A DNA stretch of 11,806 nucleotides from Paramicrosporidium saccamoebae KSL3 (Eukaryota; Fungi; Cryptomycota), in assembly GCA_002794465.1 (NCBI GenBank), contig MTSL01000209.1, forward strand, positions 1 through 11,806, written 5' to 3'. Position numbers and translations under genes: made by a program. Within the stretch, counting starts at the first letter, position 1, and every line of letters begins with the position of its first letter. The notes under the pieces are model-generated. The model saw only the letters and a program-made list of their open reading frames with translations. It searched no databases and was not told the origin of the DNA. Shown here one piece after another: positions 1 through 10,767 of this stretch.

Positions 1-400
1 TGTCTTGTGCACAGTAATCCCAGGATAACTCAAATCGGGAGCGTGTCGACCCTGAAGACTGGAGCTGTGATTGTGCTGAGACTGAGCGCAACGGCTGCCT
101 CACCAGACTTACTACCCGCCCAGGATAAGCTTGCCGAGTCAAAGTGTAATAATTAGAGTTATGGCTGACCAAATAGGATTTGGATGGGCCAGCAGCCTGC
201 TTTGGCATGGACATTGGCCACACGCCATTGACCAGATCAACATACGCTTTTACTGGCATTCGACAATATAACCCTCACACAGCCTGGCGGAAGACAAAGA
301 TATTTTTTGTTACCGTTAGTATTTAATAGAGCATCGCCTGAAGCCGCAAAAATAGTATTCACTTAGACTACAGCTCAAGTGGAATAGCTATGGATGGCAT
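1..400 (-). pseudogene. B0: degenerate 5' exons of a B-family membrane protein gene (rest lies left of the window)
   Basis: 113-168 aligns without gaps to B3 exon 2 (SAITLIITL*LGKLILGG vs SARALLLLPWIAMLVLDD) with TGG->TGA at 139-141. An intron at 82-112 (GTAAGT...CTCAG, 31 nt) matches B3 intron 2. The exon 3 homologue has a -1 frameshift. Confidence 0.7.
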
Positions 401-1205: not shown

Positions 1206-1598
1206 TTATTTGATAATTTTGAGCAGGTTGGCGTCGAATAGTTCGCAGCGAACCGGCATTTCCGGTGTATGAAAAGGGTTCTTCAGGGCATAATCGGCAT
1301 AAATCTCATAGACCTTCCTGAGCACCGTTTCACATTCCCGTCCCACTGATGCGGTAAGCAGTATCTTCATTCCCGTGCCAGTCTGCAGACAATGCACGCT
1401 GAAGGGTTCCTCTCCACCCCACTCTATTGCCTCTACCCCGCCGCCGCCCGGCCCCACCCGTGCACTAATCGCATGCACACTCTGAAATGTACTGGCAATG
1501 ACCAAGTAGTCGTTGCTGGTGAGCTTGGGATGAAACCCAAAGGTCTTTTGATAGGCCAGCCCGCCAGCCTTGTTAACGAGCCACACCGAGTAGATCAT
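1206..1598 (-). CDS. TRS23: TRAPP complex subunit Trs23/TRAPPC4 (sybindin-like longin, short form without PDZ insert), 130 aa
   Basis: N-terminal MIYSVWLVNKAGGLAY and KLTSNDYLVIASTF; C-terminal LRKVYEIYADYALKNPFHTPEMPVRCELFD, characteristic of TRAPPC4. Confidence 0.93.
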   Translation of the reverse strand: MIYSVWLVNKAGGLAYQKTFGFHPKLTSNDYLVIASTFQSVHAISARVGPGGGGVEAIEWGGEEPFSVHCLQTGTGMKILLTASVGRECETVLRKVYEIYADYALKNPFHTPEMPVRCELFDANLLKIIK

Positions 1599-1605
1599 GC
1601 TACAG

Positions 1606-1830
1606 TTAACAATAAATATTTGGCAATATCAAAGCTGGTAATCAAGTTTTCGTTTTCATGCATAGTAAAAACCCGTAAATACACTCTATCTAACCTCTTG
1701 TCTCGTGAATATAGTCTCTCTCACCTTTCACGCTTACAGGATTTTCACCTCCTGTACGGAAAATAACCAGACTGCAATTATGGGTCACGACAGAACCGGA
1801 GCGCTTCTGGACCATTCCAGACGCAGATCA
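1606..1830 (+). pseudogene. Rab8 5' remnant 1 (promoter fragment plus switch II fragment)
   Basis: 1606-1626 gttaacaataaatatttggca matches 7235-7255 upstream of Rab8 (3 mismatches in 21). 1772-1828 translates LQLWVTTEPERFWTIPDA vs Rab8 [18 protein letters not shown]. Confidence 0.7.
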
Positions 1831-1899
1831 AGCTACTTTGAATAAAGTTGCAAAGATCATAGTGTTTATGTGGGATCTATAAAGAGATGTAATATCTAT

Positions 1900-2600
1900 T
1901 TAATTTCCCTTGTATGTTGCCACAACACGGGCAATGTTGACATTTCTTGCCAATATCGTGGTGACACACAAGGGAGTGTTCGGGAAGCCCATTGATCGTC
2001 CAAACTATAGATCCTGTGAACCGCAAAACTAGCAACCACTAACGTCCCACAATGCGTTGGATCCCATCTTCTGCAAACGACCTGCCTGTGAACAGATTGA
2101 TTGCAAGTTTCGATGCAAACTCTTTCCGAAAATCCAATTTACGATTCTTCAGTTCCGGCTCGAAACTTGTGTGCTTCACAAGTGAGATGAATTTCTTCGC
2201 AAATGCCTGCTCGGGCAGGCATTCTACGAAATGGGTCTTCAGAATCAGCAGGGCCAGGGAGATCCATCAGTGTCCTCAAGGTCCAGACCTTCCAAGCGCC
2301 TTTCCTAAGGGGTGCGCTTACTGCAAGCAAGAGCCACGCCCACAGCACGTGGACACTGGGGTCGCACTTAGCCATCTGGATAGCCGTACTCAGACATCCC
2401 ATGATGCAGACACCGAACTCAGCTATCAGTGTACCATACTCGGGATAGGCCGGCAGCTACAGAGCAGATTAGCAAGAGGGCTATGCGTACTCGTGACGTG
2501 CGAGAGATGGGAGAAAGCAAATGTTATTGCAATTTGAAACACGGATTGCGGGGGGGGGATCCACTGTTGAGCTTGTTTAGTACCAACCTAAAAAATTAAC
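1900..2600 (-). pseudogene. B1: frameshifted B-family membrane protein gene
   Basis: Homologous to B2/B3 exons 5-6, with the 34-nt intron 5 retained (gtacgc...gctaat...gtag). An 11-nt deletion follows AGL, a +1 frameshift lies near 2262 and a stop near 2040. The C-terminal remnant NVNIARVVATYKGN* ends ~1900. Confidence 0.85.
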
Positions 2601-2601
2601 T

Positions 2602-3014
2602 CAATATGGAAGTTTGCATGACTCGACCTGGAGGGCACCAAATACGGTAAGATATCCATGCCGCAATGCTGTGATTACAATGAGACCGTGTGTAAGGACT
2701 GCTTCACTAGTGTCACTACGTGTGCTGGCCACATGTCATCAATCAGATCAGCATACCGCTATTCAGCAGTATCACCCTCACATAGGCTGGCGGAAGACAA
2801 AGATATTCGTGTTGCAGTTGGTATTTGATAGCATCGCCTGAATCAGCAAATATGATGCTTCCTTTGAATAGTTTGTGTAAAATAGCTATGGATGGCAACG
2901 CTCAAAGGTAACCAACCAATCACAAGTGACCCCTTTCAAGATTGCAGGGGGCCAATCATTCATAGTGATATATATATCCTGATGTACACATCTCGCACAC
3001 ACCAACATGCGCAT
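2602..3014. repeat. Near-identical copy of 4681-5093 (B-A intergenic region)
   Basis: 8 differences in 413 bp by manual comparison; 2617-2926 is identical to 4696-5005 (310 bp). Confidence 0.95.
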
Positions 3015-3609
3015 CAGTGTCGAACTAGAAGAGTTCTCAATGATAGCACCAATGCTAGCTCACGTGTTTCTTTTTACCCAAATTAGCTCAGAGGAAGAGT
3101 GGGTGTCCGGGATAATAATGGCGCTTTTCGCAGTGCCTGCCCTCATCTTCTTGGGCATCTTGAAATATCGTGCTGCTTATCATCGCAAAATGCCAAAGTG
3201 GCAGCGTTTTGAAGGCAGCCTCAGACCTGGTAGCAATCTGAGTGTATATCTGAAAGAGATTTTTCTATGGGAGGCAAAAACGACCCCAGTCTACAGCCCA
3301 TTTCTAAGCGGAGTGTGGGATTCGCTTTGTTTTATTGTCATCTGGCTCCTATTTCCACCCCGATTTGCTCTGGCATACATAGGAATTGAGGGGTTTTATA
3401 GTGCCCTGTATACGATTGTGATTTTTTCCTGCATAGATCGCTTTGCTGAAATTGACAATTTTGTGTACAACCGCCGACGCTATACATTTGTCCGCAAGGG
3501 ATTATACCAGTCTGTGATTCAAGACGGAGATCAAAATGTTGTGTACTACCCAACGGTTGACCTCTATGCATTAGTTCCGCCCGGTAACCAATTAATACCA
3601 CACCAATAA
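3007..3609 (+). CDS. A2: uncharacterised membrane protein, 200 aa, paralog of A1/A3
   Basis: Intact ORF with the conserved start context and motifs. It is the most divergent copy in the N-terminus and after PPRF. Confidence 0.85.
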   Translation: MRISVELEEFSMIAPMLAHVFLFTQISSEEEWVSGIIMALFAVPALIFLGILKYRAAYHRKMPKWQRFEGSLRPGSNLSVYLKEIFLWEAKTTPVYSPFLSGVWDSLCFIVIWLLFPPRFALAYIGIEGFYSALYTIVIFSCIDRFAEIDNFVYNRRRYTFVRKGLYQSVIQDGDQNVVYYPTVDLYALVPPGNQLIPHQ

Positions 3610-3694
3610 AGCCATTTTTGCGCAAACTGGTATAAATTGTATTTTCTGACGCGGTCGCGGCCCATAAAGTTCATCGAAACATAACAGTCCATCG

Positions 3695-3820
3695 CTGCCA
3701 CCCTCACCCCAATTGTTCCCCATGAGTACAGGCATCGATTTTGAAATCTACACCATCTCCCTGGACGGCAATGATTCTGAAGTGTACCCGATCATCAGCC
3801 AAATGTTTCGTCGCTTGGAA
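3695..3820 (+). pseudogene. Rab8 5' remnant 2 (switch I/effector region)
   Basis: Translates TGIDFEIYTISLDG vs Rab8 [14 protein letters not shown]. 17-nt exact match accatctccctggacgg at 3752-3768 = 7461-7477. Confidence 0.85.
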
Positions 3821-3886
3821 TTGTTTTGAACATAACAGTATCGATAAAGCGATGAAATTTTTATTTAAGGTGTATACAGGTGTGGA

Positions 3887-4626
3887 TTAGTGAGCTTTGA
3901 ATGATTCTTTTCCTGTGTATACCGCCAGAACATGCGCAAAGTTGGCGTTCATTAGAAGGACCAATGGCTCGGAATCTTCTCGACCGTTCCAACAATATAC
4001 AAAAGAGCACCATGCAACGACGATCCAGCAAATCGCACCAAATCTTGTTGTCCTCTTGCAATCAAAGCCGTATGCAACCGCTACGGATGCGCAGTATGAA
4101 AAGTACGCAAAACCGAGCGCACCCCAGCCGAGCTGTACACTGGCTAGAACGGATGCCGTGCTCGCGCAAGCATTCAGAAAACATCTCAACCCGAGCTCCA
4201 CCCAAAAGCCCACTTTGCGATGCTTCAGATCCGGCTTGGGACATGTGCGTTCCACAAGTGAGATCAATTTCTCTATAAATGCCTGTCCGGGCAGGCGTTT
4301 TGTGCACTGGGTCATTAAAGTTGCCAGGACCAGGAACACTATCAGTGCCAATGAGGTCCAGACTTTCCCAGTGCCCCGCATGAAGGGTGCGCTTACTGCA
4401 AGCAGAAGCCACACCCATAACACGTGCACCCTGGGGTCGCGTCCGGCCATTTGGACGACCGTGCCCAGGCATGCCATTGTGCACACACTGAGAGCCTTGA
4501 TTACTAGATCATATTCTGGCCACACTTTGGTTAAGCCCGAGACTATAAACAGGTCAGTAGAAGATTTAGGGTACTAGCAATTTGTAAGAAGTGAGAAAAC
4601 AAACAAGCCGTGCCAATGTGGAACAT
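3887..4626 (-). CDS. B2: multi-pass membrane protein; minimal model 235 aa (exons 4626-4575, 4542-3887); 5' structure unresolved
   Basis: The last exon is 656 nt, the same length as in B3, with no stops or indels and roughly 45% aa identity. Intron 4574-4543 (32 nt, GTACCC...TACTGAC...TAG) absorbs both indels seen vs B3. Upstream FHIG...FSH is conserved through synonymous changes. Confidence 0.65.
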
Positions 4627-4631
4627 GAATG

Positions 4632-5093
4632 GCGGGAGACTCACTGCAGGGCATGTTAAATGCCAACACAAAGATTGTCCCAATATGGAAGTTTACATGA
4701 CTCGACCTGGAGGGCACCAAATACGGTAAGATATCCATGCCGCAATGCTGTGATTACAATGAGACCGTGTGTAAGGACTGCTTCACTAGTGTCACTACGT
4801 GTGCTGGCCACATGTCATCAATCAGATCAGCATACCGCTATTCAGCAGTATCACCCTCACATAGGCTGGCGGAAGACAAAGATATTCGTGTTGCAGTTGG
4901 TATTTGATAGCATCGCCTGAATCAGCAAATATGATGCTTCCTTTGAATAGTTTGTGTAAAATAGCTATGGATGGCAACGCTCAAAGGTAACCAACCAATC
5001 ACAAGCGACCCCTTTCAAGATTGCAGGGGACCAATCATTAATTGTATTATATATATCCTGATGTACACATCTCTCACACACCAACATGCGCAT
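4632..5093. repeat. Mosaic intergenic copy: 4681-5093 matches 2602-3014; 4632-4748 matches 6760-6876
   Basis: 4632-4748 vs 6760-6876 shows 5 differences in 117 bp, and 4632-4694 is identical to 6760-6822. Confidence 0.9.
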
Positions 5094-5670
5094 AAGTGAC
5101 AAGATACACAAGTTTTCGTTTGCAATCTCCCCTCCGTTTTACATTCATGTCCTCGGCCACATCCGCCCAGTAGAATTTGCACCTGGGATATTGCTGATGT
5201 TCTCCGTAGTGCCTTTTGTCTTTCTTTTGGCCATCCTGAAATATCGTGCTGCTTACCATCGCAAAGTTTTAAAGTGGCAGAGTTTTGAGAGCGGCGTCGG
5301 GTCTGACACTAGTTTCAGTGTATATCTGAGGGAAGTCTTTTTGTGGGAGGCAAAGACGACCCCAGTCTATAGCCCGGTTCTTAATGGATTTTGGGAATTG
5401 CTTTGTGGTCTCGTCGTATGGCTCATTTTTCCACCTCGATTTACTCTGGCCCATCTAATAATAGCGTGGATGTATGGCTTCCCTCAGATGTTCGCAACCA
5501 GACACAGATGGAGCCGTTTCACTGGCACCAGTAATTTTGTATATAACGGCCAACGTTATAGATATATCCGCTGGGGACAGTATCATTCCAGATTTGAAGA
5601 CAAAGACCAAAATGACATATATTATCCAACTGCCGATCTCCACGCATTAGTCCCGCAAGACCGGAGATGA
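5086..5670 (+). CDS. A3: uncharacterised membrane protein, 194 aa, paralog of A1/A2
   Basis: Intact ORF with the conserved start context and motifs. C-terminal [32 protein letters not shown]. Confidence 0.85.
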
Positions 5671-6012: not shown

Positions 6013-7074
6013 TTACTGGCTCTTGACTGAGTCTTTTCCGGTGTGTGTTACCAGGAGATGAGCAAGGTTGGCGTTCAGCAAGACAATCAATGTCTCAGGA
6101 TCTTTATAACCGTTCCAACAATACCATCCCGTGCACCATAGGATCACAGGCCACCAAAATCCTGCGATGCGTTCGTTCCTATCTTCCGCAAAGCGACTTG
6201 CAACGAAACACGTCAGAAAAAAGGCGGCAGTCGGAATCAGGAGGCCCGCAAGTCCTAGTTGAATGTCCGAAAGGACTAGAGATCCGCTTGTAAAAAGGTT
6301 GACGGCCAACCTCAGCAGGAACTCTTGCCAAAAACCCAACAGGTAATTCTCAGGGTGCGGCCTGGGGCTTGCGCGCACTACCTGTGAGTTGAGCTTCTTT
6401 ATCCACTCTTGCCCAGGAAGGCGCTTGTGGAAATGGGACAGTATAACCACGATGGCTAGGGATGCTGCCAATGTCAACGAGGTCCACGCTTTCCAAGTGC
6501 CTCGCATGAGGGGTGCGCTTGCTGCAAGCAGCAGCCACACCCACAACACGTGGACACGGGGGTCGCACCTAGCCATCTGGATAGCCGTGCTCAGGCATCC
6601 CATGATGCAGAAACTAAGCACAGCTACCAGTACGCCATATTCTGGCCATATTTGGGCTAGGCCGGCAGCTACAAGGCAGATGAGTAAGAGGGTAGCGTGT
6701 ACTCATGATGTGGGAGAGGTGGGAAAAAGCAAATGTGACTCCGATATGGAACGTGGCTTGCGGGAGACTCACTGCAGGGCATGTTAAATGCCAACACAAA
6801 GATTGTCCCAATATGGAAGTTTGCATGACTCGACCTGGAGAGCACCAAATACGGTAAGACATACATGCTGCAATGCCCCATGAACAATGATTCCGAGGGA
6901 AATCAAATTGAGAGCGTGTCGACTCTGAAAGATGGGAGCTGGGATTGCAATGGGACTGAGTGCAAATACTGCTTCACTCACTAATCGTCCAAGACAAGCA
7001 TAGCGATCCAAGGTAGAAGTAGCAGAGCCCTCGCTGACTAATGGGGAATTGGATGAGCGTACCGAGTAGATCAT
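6013..7074 (-). CDS. B3: 6-exon, 306-aa membrane protein with ~10 hydrophobic segments (DMT/SLC35-like size and topology, unconfirmed)
   Basis: Exons 7074-7063, 7037-6982, 6955-6865, 6834-6798, 6771-6703, 6668-6013 sum to 921 nt, one open frame. Introns are 25, 26, 30, 26 and 34 nt, all GT-AG. Frames of exons 2, 3, 5 and 6 are supported by conservative or synonymous changes in the paralogous copies; exon 4 has only one informative site. Confidence 0.75.
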
Positions 7075-7267
7075 GTCGCCGATTAGTGGCGAATACTTGT
7101 TAGTGAAGACCCGAGAATCGGTGTGAGGCTTTTAATAGAGATGCTTTATTAAGGGATTCTTGATTTATATAGACACACTCTCTTGCACTCTTTTACGGAT
7201 GTAATAAGAAATCTTTGTTCCCTCATAACTGTGGTTAACGATAAATAATTGACATAAACACGACACG

Positions 7268-8073
7268 ATGGCGACTGGTTTTGCGGCGGGCAAGACAAAC
7301 TATGACCATTTAATCAAACTTTTGCTCATTGGGGACAGCGGTAGGGAGGGGGAGCGACTAAGGTGTAGGTGTGGGAAAGAGCTGCTTGCTGCTGCGTTTC
7401 TGTGACGACTCCTTCACGCCCAGCTTCATCACGACCATCGGTATCGACTTTAAAATCCGCACCATCTCCCTGGACGGAAAACGAATCAAGCTGCAAATCT
7501 GGGACACGGCGGGACAGGAGCGCTTCCGGACCATCACCAACGCATATTATCGGGGGGCGATGGGAATTCTGCTGGTGTACGATGTGACGGACGAACGGTC
7601 GTTCAACAATGTGCGGAATTGGATTCGGAATACGGAACAGTTTGCCAGCGAGGGTGTAGACAAGATTCTGGTGGGCAACAAATGCGACATGGCTGAAAAG
7701 CGGGTAGCAGGAGAGAATTGGGAGTCATATGTAGGCGGTGGAACGGGAGCGAGCACAGGCATTAGCCGACGAATATGGACTGTCGTTTCTGGAGACCAGC
7801 GCCAAGGCCAATGTCAATGTGGAGGAGGCATTTATGATGCTCGCTCGAGACATTAAGAAACGGCTAATTGACACGCAGAATGTTGTGAGCAACAAACCCC
7901 CTCCGACAGTCTCCTTGGAGAGCGATAGTACCATTGGTCGTCTCCGATCCGCCTGTTGTTGGGGCGGCACCTGCGAAGATTCATCGACAGCCGGATCAAC
8001 GGGCCCAGCTGGTTCAACGGTTCCAGTCGGATCGACCCCGCAGTCGCCGCAATCCACCCAATCTGCACACTAA
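7268..8073 (+). CDS. RAB8: Rab8/Sec4-family small GTPase, 248 aa, 3 exons (7268-7340, 7369-7703, 7735-8073)
   Basis: Motifs [14 protein letters not shown]|[45 protein letters not shown]. Introns of 28 nt (gtaggg...gactaa...gtag) and 31 nt (gtagca...atgtag) join the two ORF-track fragments. Confidence 0.95.
7990..8043 (+). repeat. 3 x 18-nt tandem repeat in the Rab8 tail ([18 protein letters not shown])
   Basis: gccggatcaacgggccca / gctggttcaacggttcca / gtcggatcgaccccgcag. Confidence 0.75.
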
Positions 8074-8676: not shown

Positions 8677-10767
8677 ATGCCAATGGAGCTGGGCCAGCCA
8701 CCGTTATGGCTTCCACAGCGTGACAGCAAAATGGAACACTTCCGGCAGGCCATTTGTGAACGTCATGGTGTGCAGCTCAAAACCTATCCGGACCTCCATC
8801 AATGGTCGATAAACAATCTGTCTTTATTTTGGCAGCATGTTTGGGAGTTTTGTGATATAGTCCATTCCCAGCCATTTGAACAGGTACACTTAGGGACGTG
8901 TTCACTAACAGAAAAGGTGGTGGACGAGGAAAAGACAATTGACAGTGTTCCAGAATGGTTCCGAGGTGCAAAACTCAATTTTGCCGAGAATTTGTTGCGC
9001 TTCAGAGACACGCGCACTGCAATCCTCTATGAAAGCGAGTTGGGCAGCGATTCCAGATCAATTTCCTACTTGGAACTCTACTCTGAGGTGGCCAAGGTGG
9101 CAGCCGCTCTACGGAGCAGTGGGGTGGGAGTAAATGACGTCATTGCTGCATTTGCAGGAAATGTGCCCGAGGTTGTCGTGTTTATGCTTGCAGCAGCCTC
9201 CATCGGGGCCATATTTACAACAGTACCGCCTGATTTCGGCGTAACGGCCGTCTGTGACCGTCTGAGTCAGACAAGTCCCAGGATAGTTCTAGCCAGTCCA
9301 TCAGTCTATTATAACGGCAAGGTCCACTGTCAAATGGACAAGGTCAACCAAATGGTCAGTCAAGTTTCGTCCATAGAAAAAATTGTCATCCTCGCCGACA
9401 AAGTAGCCAGTGATGGCCCTGAGGATGGCAAATTTGTGAAATATTCACAGTTCATCGAATCATTTGCCGTGGATGCCCTTTCTTTTACACAACTGCCGTT
9501 TAATCATCCACTGTATATTCTGTACTCTTCAGGAACTACGGGGAAACCAAAATGTCTGGTGCATTCCGCGGGCGGTACTTTGATCCAGCATCTAAAAGAA
9601 CACATTCTCCATGGCGATCTCACGCGTTCCGATGTCTTTCTGCAATACACCAATATTGGTTGGATGATGTGGCATTGGATGGTCTCAGTCCTAGCCGTAG
9701 GCTCCACCATTGTACTTTACGAAGGATCACCCTTTAAACCCGAGACTATACAACTGTGGAGACTGATTGAAAAGCATCAAGTTACCAGATTTGGAACAAG
9801 TGCAAAGTATATTCAACATCTCCAAGAGTGTGATACCAAGAAAAGTGATGGCGGCGAGGGCAGTGAGAGTGGTGAAAATGGTAAAAGTGGGACTAGGACT
9901 ACATCTACAACTACAAACGCGACTACGCCTGCAACTACAACCGCTCTCATTGCATCGTTTGATATTTCTTCCTTGTTAACTATCTATTCGACTGGATCAC
10001 CTCTCAGTCCTAGCGATTTCCGCTTTGTCCACGATAAGATCAAGGCAGATTTGCAAATCTCATCTATTACTGGCGGAACTGATATCATTTCCCTATTTGG
10101 CGCCGGAAATCCAATGTTGCCAGTCCACGCCGGCGAGATTCAATGTCCTGGTTTGGGAATGGCTGTCAAGGCTTATTCTGATGCAGGGGAGGAAGTATTG
10201 GAGACGCCAGGCGATTTGGTTTGCACTCGTCCATTCCCGTCAATGCCCGTGGCGTTCTGGAATGACTCGGATGGATCGCTCTACCGGAACTCGTACTTTG
10301 GTCGCTTCCCCCAGTGTTGGCATCACGGCGACTTTGTCAAATTCACAAAGAATGGCGGATTAGTAATGTTGGGACGGAGTGACTCGACGTTGAATCCCGC
10401 AGGGGTGAGGTTCGGTAGCGCAGAATTGTACAATGTGGTGGCCCGGTTCCCAGAGGTCAAAGATTCATTAGTGGTTGGTGTTAGAAAGCCAGACGAAAAT
10501 GACGAGCGTGTCATCATGTTCCTGCAGACTGATTCGGGAATCGTCTCTGACGATCTCGCGATGCAAATCAAGAAGCAGATTAGATCATTGCTGTCGGCAA
10601 GACATGTGCCCGCTCTGATCTTGGCCACCCCTGCCATCCCTTACACACTCAACGGTAAAAAGGTCGAAGTGGCCGTCAAGCGCATCCTCTCCGGCAGCCC
10701 CGACATTACCACCGTGGGACTCGCAAATTCTGAATGTCTTGCCTTCTACCGCACCCTTTCTCTGTAG
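8677..10767 (+). CDS. AACS: Acetoacetyl-CoA synthetase (ANL adenylate-forming superfamily), with a probable in-frame intron at 8884-8916
   Basis: Motifs PEWFRGAKLNFAENLL, YILYSSGTTGKPKC, SITGGTD, GRSDSTLNPAGVRFGSAE, TLNGKKVE. First ATG is 8677 (8674 is GTG). The 33-nt segment gtacac...cactaac...aag removes 11 extra residues, giving PFEQ|VVD. Confidence 0.95.
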   Translation: MPMELGQPPLWLPQRDSKMEHFRQAICERHGVQLKTYPDLHQWSINNLSLFWQHVWEFCDIVHSQPFEQVHLGTCSLTEKVVDEEKTIDSVPEWFRGAKLNFAENLLRFRDTRTAILYESELGSDSRSISYLELYSEVAKVAAALRSSGVGVNDVIAAFAGNVPEVVVFMLAAASIGAIFTTVPPDFGVTAVCDRLSQTSPRIVLASPSVYYNGKVHCQMDKVNQMVSQVSSIEKIVILADKVASDGPEDGKFVKYSQFIESFAVDALSFTQLPFNHPLYILYSSGTTGKPKCLVHSAGGTLIQHLKEHILHGDLTRSDVFLQYTNIGWMMWHWMVSVLAVGSTIVLYEGSPFKPETIQLWRLIEKHQVTRFGTSAKYIQHLQECDTKKSDGGEGSESGENGKSGTRTTSTTTNATTPATTTALIASFDISSLLTIYSTGSPLSPSDFRFVHDKIKADLQISSITGGTDIISLFGAGNPMLPVHAGEIQCPGLGMAVKAYSDAGEEVLETPGDLVCTRPFPSMPVAFWNDSDGSLYRNSYFGRFPQCWHHGDFVKFTKNGGLVMLGRSDSTLNPAGVRFGSAELYNVVARFPEVKDSLVVGVRKPDENDERVIMFLQTDSGIVSDDLAMQIKKQIRSLLSARHVPALILATPAIPYTLNGKKVEVAVKRILSGSPDITTVGLANSECLAFYRTLSL

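Follow-up and report, generated by a model that had tools for sequence, protein, structure and literature searches.

The first codons of the TRS23 gene occur twice in an 11,806-nucleotide (nt) stretch of Paramicrosporidium saccamoebae DNA (bases 1-11806 of contig MTSL01000209.1, assembly GCA_002794465.1; hereafter the window), once at the head of an intact gene and once as an isolated 15-nt run lying between a Rab8 gene and B3, one copy of a tandemly repeated gene family termed B. The question that this locus raises is what the isolated run represents, and whether it has given B3 a new start codon. The original prediction held that it had, and that a newly made 25-nt intron joins the TRS23 start to the body of B3. 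The comparisons below favor another answer: the 15-mer is in all probability the scar of a deletion that removed TRS23 from its ancestral site, and B3 probably makes no TRS23-B fusion protein. P. saccamoebae is an intranuclear parasite of amoebae, the genome of which was annotated by MAKER with a Rhizopus-trained Augustus and for which RNA-seq data are published (PMC5701793). On the plus strand, the array in the window reads B0 upstream region, A0, TRS23 (minus strand), Rab8 remnant 1, B1, A1, Rab8 remnant 2, B2, A2, Rab8 remnant 3, B3, the isolated 15-mer (the relic), a 193-nt spacer and intact Rab8, beyond which lie a small gene, an acetoacetyl-CoA synthetase and leukotriene-A4-hydrolase copies.

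The two 15-mers, at positions 7061-7075 and 1585-1599, both read ACCGAGTAGATCATG on the plus strand (CATGATCTACTCGGT on the minus strand) and are mismatched on both flanks. No third site in the window matches this sequence with up to one mismatch, and the expectation from 200 shuffles is zero, so the exact identity on which the original prediction was built stands. The copy at 1585-1599 begins the 130-amino acid (aa) open reading frame (ORF) of a Sybindin/TRS23 protein (1206-1598, minus strand; Pfam PF04099, E = 6.7e-34), and proteins related to it range from 130 to 138 aa, with MIYS, MIFN or MIYT at the N-terminus. Together with its proximal upstream motif (1599-1625), the surviving gene occupies 1206-1625. 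The relic (7060-7077, minus strand) reads GAC ATG ATC TAC TCG GTA, with the start codon at 7074-7072, and keeps four and two-thirds TRS23 codons. The coding remainder of TRS23 is absent at the relic: homology does not extend past codon 5, and from 7058 on the sequence is of B type. As had been claimed, the DNA after the 15-mer is homologous to B, beginning two bases on and aligning over 6900-7058 (minus strand) with the B0 upstream region (27-189) at 69.5% identity. Both copies of the 15-mer are also oriented away from Rab8 sequence, as the original prediction had noted, the relic from intact Rab8 (7268-8073, plus strand; introns 7341-7368 and 7704-7734 of 28 and 31 nt, 249 aa once spliced) and the functional copy from a decayed remnant (~1613/1720-1904). 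This remnant 1 (1613-1904, plus strand), the dead partner of the surviving TRS23, is 76% identical to intact Rab8 between 1751-1828 and 7469-7547; weaker colinear matches reach back to the promoter motif.

The strongest evidence on the origin of the relic comes from a close relative (L007), in which the TRS23 protein is 99% identical and the DNA 89.5% identical to that of P. saccamoebae. The pre-deletion arrangement that was to be sought in relatives is found there: the genuine Rab8 5' end of L007 stands head-to-head with an intact TRS23 across a 346-nt spacer, and behind TRS23 come B-A intergenic DNA, a fragment of a B pseudogene and a complete B gene. The flank on the Rab8 side is shared, with window positions 7219-7441 being 88% identical to L007 223-1. 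The relic matches the intact TRS23 start of L007 (517-534) at 18 of 18 bases, GACATGATCTACTCGGTA, and its codon 5 is GTA as in L007, while the TRS23 of the window has GTG. The score of the relic region against the TRS23 5' end of L007 is matched by 0 of 1000 shuffles; against the B0 and B2 upstream regions the scores are at chance level (309/1000 and 624/1000). Homology to L007 extends upstream of the start codon. With the 15-mer excluded, the ~50 nt of upstream flank score 24 against L007 ~450-516, compared with 14.2 +/- 2.7 for shuffled sequence (7/1000 shuffles), and the upstream region of the surviving TRS23 is also related to L007 (0/1000 shuffles). The proximal upstream region of the lost TRS23 copy (7078-7140, minus strand) aligns with L007 but is decayed, its AT-rich CAAATRTTTATYGTTAAC motif being degraded: counted by hand, the 27 nt that precede the relic ATG match L007 at 17 positions, while the functional copy at 1599-1625 keeps 18 of 20 motif positions. 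The rest of the ancestral TRS23-Rab8 intergenic region (7141-7267) aligns colinearly with L007 and carries the Rab8-proximal motif GTTAACGATAAATAATTGACA at 7234-7254, which recurs at 1613-1633 with 18 of 21 matches. When the two spacers of the window are compared directly (1600-1750 with 7076-7267), only a 21-nt motif is found in common (6/300 shuffles) and the global alignment is at the level of shuffled spacers; their relationship is thus visible only by way of L007. The 15-mer is, on these alignments, a true relic of TRS23 and not a chance match.

More distant relatives establish which gene order is ancestral. A 98-kb contig (L008) with a TRS23 of 70% identity carries, in this order, an AMP-binding enzyme, a small gene, Rab8 (minus strand), TRS23 (plus strand), Rbsn/FYVE (minus strand), TPD and eRF1. 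Rab8 and TRS23 stand head-to-head in L008-L011 and likewise in L012, where TRS23 is 76% identical. The order in L008 therefore makes Rab8 and TRS23 ancestral head-to-head neighbors, with TRS23 followed by the genes that in P. saccamoebae now lie on contig MTSL01000008.1 (contig 8). Since the B upstream region and the relic stand in the ancestral order, the junction between them must be a deletion. Furthermore, a Rab8 fragment lies beside the B 3' end in every unit of the window as well as in the relatives L004, L005 and L006 (L004-L007 derive from JGI metagenomes 3300042203 and 3300042205). Both these fragments and the presence of two TRS23 copies would be explained by a tandem duplication that started at B and ended midway through Rab8.

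The original prediction had a single deletion take the B 5' end, a fourth copy of the neighboring gene A and the TRS23 body. The scar of a deletion reaching from TRS23 into the DNA upstream of B3 is borne out, but it is uncertain whether an A copy was lost in the same event. No A-like coding sequence is present in L007 (best tblastn E = 1.7), and the B-A intergenic DNA behind its TRS23 aligns up to the equivalent of B0 position ~189, which is the site of the B3/relic junction. The retention of this intergenic DNA implies that an A copy once stood there, and because L007 lacks A while keeping TRS23, loss of A and loss of TRS23 are separable.

The order of events that would best accommodate these observations begins with an ancestor carrying Rbsn - B - A - TRS23 <> Rab8, in which Rab8 and TRS23 stood head-to-head across a short common intergenic region. 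A tandem duplication from B to mid-Rab8 would have given two TRS23 copies and placed a Rab8 fragment by the B 3' end, and later duplications would have assembled the array. The TRS23 copy adjoining intact Rab8 would then have been deleted from codon 5 on, with part of the B3 upstream DNA and perhaps an A copy, while the distal TRS23 copy (1206-1598), beside the dead Rab8 remnant, would have persisted as the working gene. The relic ATG would now lie in what is most likely non-coding DNA, ~320 nt upstream of the position at which B genes normally start.

This last point depends on where B genes begin. An exhaustive HMMER search gathered 15 members of the B family, an unnamed family of membrane proteins. 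The start motif M..IGT.F...HL..I is conserved in P0002 (MLYIGTTFILSRLLHIA), P0007 (MLRIGTAFIFAHLANIA), P0010 (MYLGVGGILIHLFQII), P0015 (MLVFNATYILSHLARIL), L005 (MPRLGTFCLFSHLVRIL), L007 (MLQIGTTFIISRFLHIA), B2 (MFHIGTACLFSHFLQIA) and B4, and the same aligned start is found in members that are only 23-27% identical. This conserved position lies ~320 nt downstream of the relic. It is occupied by ATG in B2 (4626-4624), B4, L002, L005 and L007 and by GTG in B1. The first mini-exon that starts here is followed by an intron found at the same place in B1, B2, B5, L002, L005 and L007, with lengths of 32-34 nt that differ by non-multiples of three; in B3 it is 34 nt long (6669-6702, minus strand; GTACAC...ACTCAT...TTGTAG).

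Directly upstream of the B start lies a 45-nt block, TTGGGACAATCTTTGTGTTGGCATTTAACATGCCCTGCAGTGAGT (6767-6811, minus strand), which is exactly repeated in B2 (4639-4683) and near-identical in B4 (L003 1-48) and L002 (~89-133). It is nearly unchanged in L002 even though this is another species with proteins just ~44% identical, and is possibly a core promoter or leader. The block was considered as an RNA gene and rejected, as there is no Rfam match, no tRNA and a fold z of -0.29. Metagenomes were scanned twice, for B protein patterns and for the conserved block, and neither scan gave a match.

Further upstream, coding exons before the B start were sought in three frames of B0-B4, L002 and L005, but no frame stays open in every copy. 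The relic-type frame contains TAA and TGA in B2, B3 and B4. In B2 the frame that runs on into the mini-exon is closed, and in L002 it is out of register. The B0 upstream region contains stops, as well as 5- and 1-nt indels relative to B3, and the region is mostly missing from B1 and B2. Differences between B0 and B3 are spread flat over codon positions (7/7/7 and 7/8/8, by hand count from the alignment). In L007, the full B gene is preceded by just ~45 nt of the conserved block, beyond which lies the B pseudogene fragment. The lack of a common open upstream frame and the short leader of the L007 gene mean that the B exons 1 and 2 of the original prediction are no demonstrable exons; its AHPNPIW reading of B0 as coding sequence runs into TGA nine codons later. 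From these sequence comparisons, the DNA joined to the relic (6900-7058) is most likely non-coding upstream DNA of B3.

B3 itself looks like a working gene with a damaged start. Its main exon (6013-6668 including the stop codon, minus strand) has 221 open codons, with a proportion of nonsynonymous differences (pN) of ~0.33 against a synonymous proportion (pS) of 0.6-0.76 in comparisons with paralogues and relatives. The conserved intron of 32-34 nt is thus followed by a main exon with invariant residues and under purifying selection, as expected of a genuine family member. The family start ATG is missing: ACG stands in its place (6754-6752, by alignment of the copies), while the rest of the mini-exon is intact. 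Consequently, B3 needs another start. Two upstream ATGs, at 6862-6860 and 6826-6824, are in frame with the first mini-exon, and from ATG 6862, with the conserved intron alone removed, a complete B3 of 271 aa is read. B2 has TAA directly after the second of these ATGs. Translation starts at near-cognate codons are known as well. The start of B3 is more likely the in-frame ATG at 6862 or 6826, the ATG that ends the mini-exon (6705-6703) or, weakly, the ACG itself. The relic ATG is the least economical of the possible starts.

The intron proposed to connect it to B3 can be judged against those for which comparisons between species or paralogues give support. These amount to a small sample of four independent introns (Rab8 1 and 2, synthetase and B) in 11 copies. 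They are 28-34 nt long with donors of the form GTA[CGT]NN, and Rab8 intron 1 is 28 nt in L007 too, with a diverged interior. In 10 of the 11 copies there is a YTNAY motif, the A of which falls at positions 21-25, with 7-12 nt left to the 3' end; the exception is Rab8 intron 2, where GTCAT is a near-match to a branch motif. The candidate, GTACGCTCATCCAATTCCCCATTAG (7038-7062, minus strand), does begin and end as claimed, GT...AG at 7062-7038 with TAG in B3 where B0 has TGG, and its boundaries GTACGC...TTAG include a donor typical of the lineage. At 25 nt, it is shorter than all 11 supported copies, its sole YTNAY motif lies at position 9, with 16 nt left to the 3' end, and it is not conserved, B0 having TGG at the acceptor and no AG. 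Even allowing for the small sample, this makes the 25-nt intron improbable, and the stretch is judged to be no intron. Intron-length statistics for the P. saccamoebae genome were not found in papers. Nor is a 16-nt 'intron' that would connect ATGCCCTGCA with CCACGTTC in B3 accepted, as B2 and L002 lack an acceptor there.

Splicing of the 25 nt also fails to do what it was said to do. Rather than restoring the frame into 'B exon 2', removal of these bases alone gives the ORF MIYSSARALLLLPWIAMLVLDD*, which stops after 22 codons. Left unspliced, the frame from the relic ATG is already open for 96 codons (6784-7074, minus strand), ending at TAA (6786-6784) before the conserved B start, so no rescue of B3 by intronization was needed. 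To reach B from the relic ATG by way of the 25-nt intron, two further mini-introns (6981-6956 and 6797-6772) have to be removed, and these are atypical too. In a gene fusion, the parts of two parents should lie in the same orientation and share a continuous frame. The former is seen here, with the TRS23 5' end followed on the same strand by B3 upstream DNA; a continuous frame into conserved B coding sequence is absent and would need one to three unsupported mini-introns.

Several observations nevertheless weigh against the deletion-scar reading and are best considered together. B3 has lost its start ATG and needs another, and its main exon appears functional. The relic frame is open for 96 codons, which is weak evidence: its 91 B-derived codons are open in 110 of 2000 dinucleotide shuffles (p ~0.055), and some frame is open in 13%. 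At its donor the candidate intron has the hexamer GTACGC, with which the conserved intron of B1 also begins. By hand count, 0 of 16 coding bases of the relic differ from L007 as against 8 of 18 bases of the adjacent motif, and an unchanged relic beside a decayed motif could reflect constraint on the relic or merely a recent deletion. In the L002 copy of the conserved block, three of four base differences remove both stops of the relic-type frame and one extra base restores register, which hints that upstream coding may be possible in some copies. Finally, the public gene model PSACC_03511 starts at the relic ATG.

The alternative that best survives these points is use of the relic ATG without the 25-nt intron, either as a 96-codon upstream ORF that damps B3 or as the start of a 333-aa protein extended by way of a 26-nt intron (6797-6772). 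Beyond the open frame, the relic ATG has a purine at -3, and removal of 6797-6772 along with the conserved intron yields a single ORF; the 26-nt piece holds the TAA and a TTAAC branch-like motif, and L002 lacks both the TAA and the motif while a 1-nt indel keeps its frame. However, the piece is below the supported intron lengths and its branch A is at position 14, an ATG in that frame is missing from B2 and the donor from L007, the openness reaches only p ~0.055 and the promoter motif is decayed. This alternative is unlikely. A protein search with the 96-aa ORF gave no matches, but this search was insensitive, as it also missed the known self-match P0001; neither it nor a search with the large 3' B3 exon, in which PSACC_03511 was matched, returned a transcript-derived protein.

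The fusion as originally predicted, in which B3 is a chimeric gene that is transcribed from the TRS23 side of a bidirectional promoter, is translated from the TRS23 ATG and has a newly made intron of 25 nt at 7062-7038, is highly improbable. It draws on the GT...AG boundaries and genuine-looking donor, on the missing B3 ATG, on the perfectly conserved relic, and on the open 316-aa frame that results once four introns are removed. Yet three of these are mini-introns of 25, 26 and 26 nt without support in paralogues or relatives, all below the supported lengths and with misplaced branch motifs, and the first alone leads to a stop after 22 codons. The 'exons' that they join are non-coding in B0 (a stop and frameshifts), mostly deleted in B1 and B2 and absent from L007, while a frame-fitting GT...AG within ~40 nt is common by chance and the AT-rich motif upstream of the relic ATG is decayed. 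The junction DNA lies upstream of the family start and an ordinary ATG suffices for B3, so translation from the TRS23 ATG through this intron is not upheld. The broader proposal that the captured TRS23 ATG, an orphaned promoter half and new introns of 25-26 nt together keep B3 alive after the change of ATG to ACG is very unlikely. Were the fusion real, one identifiable deletion could be credited with the birth of both a chimeric gene and new introns, a rare case that the evidence makes unlikely.

Two remaining explanations concern the 15-mer itself. A false join at the common 15-mer during assembly is hardly credible. The setting might invite one, being a tandem array in a short-read draft with a contig that starts inside a repeat and with ~390 nt of 99-100% identity between B1 and B2. 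But both flanks of the relic are unlike those of intact TRS23, and codon GTA, shared with L007 and not with the GTG of the window TRS23, means that the relic is no copy of 1585-1600. Assemblers usually work with k-mers longer than 15 nt, so that such an overlap falls below them. Coincidence, or derivation of the B3 ATG from a native upstream ATG of B (B0 ATGTTGATCTGGTCA, B1/B2 ATGCTGATCTGATTG), which MAFFT aligns with the B3 ATG at 10 of 15 matches and a 3-nt gap, can be set aside, since no chance match is expected, the upstream homology and flanking synteny lead to L007, and the native start was rejected as a source on its chance-level scores against B0/B2 (309/1000 and 624/1000) and on the 0/1000 obtained with the TRS23 5' end of L007.

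With the deletion scar as the preferred reading, the locus can be set beside known systems. It resembles other cases of tandem segmental duplication and differential loss in that two TRS23 copies arose with the duplicated unit, after which P. saccamoebae kept the distal TRS23 and a 15-18-nt scar while in L007 the ancestral site still holds its copy; Rab8 fragments form the counterpart relics of the other partner. It differs in that the relic of P. saccamoebae consists of the start-codon region only and forms no recognizable pseudogene. The Rab8/TRS23 pair also resembles a bidirectional-promoter pair, as the genes are divergent neighbors ~190-350 nt apart in four lineages and an AT-rich motif containing GTTAAC precedes the ATG of each by 6-15 nt. 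It departs from such pairs in P. saccamoebae, where the pair is split and Rab8 faces only the relic while TRS23 faces a dead Rab8 fragment. The relic is thus a remnant of the pseudogene type, left where duplication and then differential loss split a bidirectional pair. This makes the locus a clean, dated case in which tandem duplication and then deletion moved an essential gene off its ancestral bidirectional partner and left a tiny relic, with the intact pre-deletion state still visible in a sister lineage.

Chimeric genes can arise by duplication and deletion when the 5' end and promoter of one gene are fused to the body of another, as in Sdic of Drosophila. The B3 locus is similar in that the TRS23 promoter side and first codons were put before B3 in the same orientation, and B3 has lost its own start. 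It differs in that the recipient DNA at the junction is non-coding B3 upstream DNA, and frame continuity requires unsupported introns. As read from the sequence, the likeness to deletion-made chimeric genes would be one of layout only. Intronization, in which point mutations at splice sites turn exonic or other sequence into an intron, has a parallel here in the short stretch between a GT that one parent contributed and an AG created by a single substitution (TGG to TAG). Against this, the 25-nt stretch is shorter than the supported introns of the lineage, its branch motif is misplaced and it is not needed for an open frame.

The public gene models of the array fare poorly, and those for PSACC_03511, the 217-aa 'TRS23' and the 334-aa A1 are untrustworthy. 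PSACC_03511 (5731-7074, minus strand), whose first 76 residues come from the 96-codon ORF, runs antisense through Rab8 remnant 3 at its C-terminus and has an intron that skips the conserved first mini-exon; it is judged to be artefactual at both ends. The 217-aa 'Sybindin' model (1206-2402, minus strand, corresponding to L001 14673-15869) combines TRS23 with a piece of B1, starting at a B1 ORF (2139-2402), and is an artefactual B1-TRS23 chimera, the real TRS23 being the 130-aa protein. The 334-aa model (2888-4577, plus strand) fuses A1 to B2 antisense, A2 (5086-5670, plus strand) has no annotation, and the public 278-aa P0007 is read through two tandem B copies, out of frame. Rab8 is annotated with 229 aa, compared with 249 aa after removal of its 28- and 31-nt introns. 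In the acetoacetyl-CoA synthetase, a 33-nt in-frame intron (8884-8916) is apparently read through, with 694 aa annotated versus an ORF of 697 codons. Introns of ~30 nt appear to have been missed in the annotation of the P. saccamoebae genome.

The window is also linked to a second contig. Contig MTSL01000008.1 ends in another B pair (B4 and B5), beside the Rbsn/FYVE gene, TPD and eRF1. The order TRS23-Rbsn-TPD-eRF1 in L008 implies that the end of contig 8 joins the start of the window. The contig start truncates the B0 upstream region (1-214, minus strand), and on this order the body of B0 is most likely B4. Some ~70 nt are seemingly missing between the two contigs. B4 has GA for GT at the donor of the conserved intron and its frame is broken further on (L003 107-112 and 480-500), which suggests that it may be a pseudogene. 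Directly downstream of B5 (L003 1224-1295) lies an inverted repeat with 30-nt arms, 93% complementary, and a 12-nt loop. A degenerate inverted repeat is seen by eye downstream of B1 (~1905-1975), where the repeat tool made no call. B1 looks dead (2450-2620 and ~1905-2140), with a GTG start (2542-2540), a degraded block containing a C run and a truncated 3' end. B1 and B2, together with the A1 and A2 upstream regions (2600-2990 and 4679-5069), are 99-100% identical to each other over ~390 nt, as against ~74% elsewhere in the units, and this tract looks like recent gene conversion.

The A genes (507-1097, 3007-3609 and 5086-5670 in the window; L004 934-1356; L005 1109-1672) encode proteins of ~190-200 aa and form a second lineage-restricted family that always accompanies B and a Rab8 fragment. 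The Pfam search assigned no family to A or B, TgpA_N (E = 0.0013) being under its cut-off.

The spacer between Rab8 and TRS23 in L007 has features of its own. It contains three motifs in the same orientation, (T/A)CAA(T/A)T(A/G)TTTATCGTTAA(C/T), at 189-209, 358-376 and 495-513, each followed 6-8 nt later by an ATG, and a tandem repeat of ~137 nt; it measures 346 nt compared with 193 nt in the window. A spot in the B upstream DNA (...GCTGCTGG; L007 1085-1095, window 189-199 / 7058) has served as a breakpoint twice, in the B3/relic junction of the window and in the L007 deletion that made the B pseudogene fragment. Microhomology of the GCTG type with both breakpoint partners is possible. Lastly, the three tandem genes of the leukotriene-A4-hydrolase type that follow the synthetase (L001 1-6133, outside the window) constitute a second tandem expansion on the same contig.

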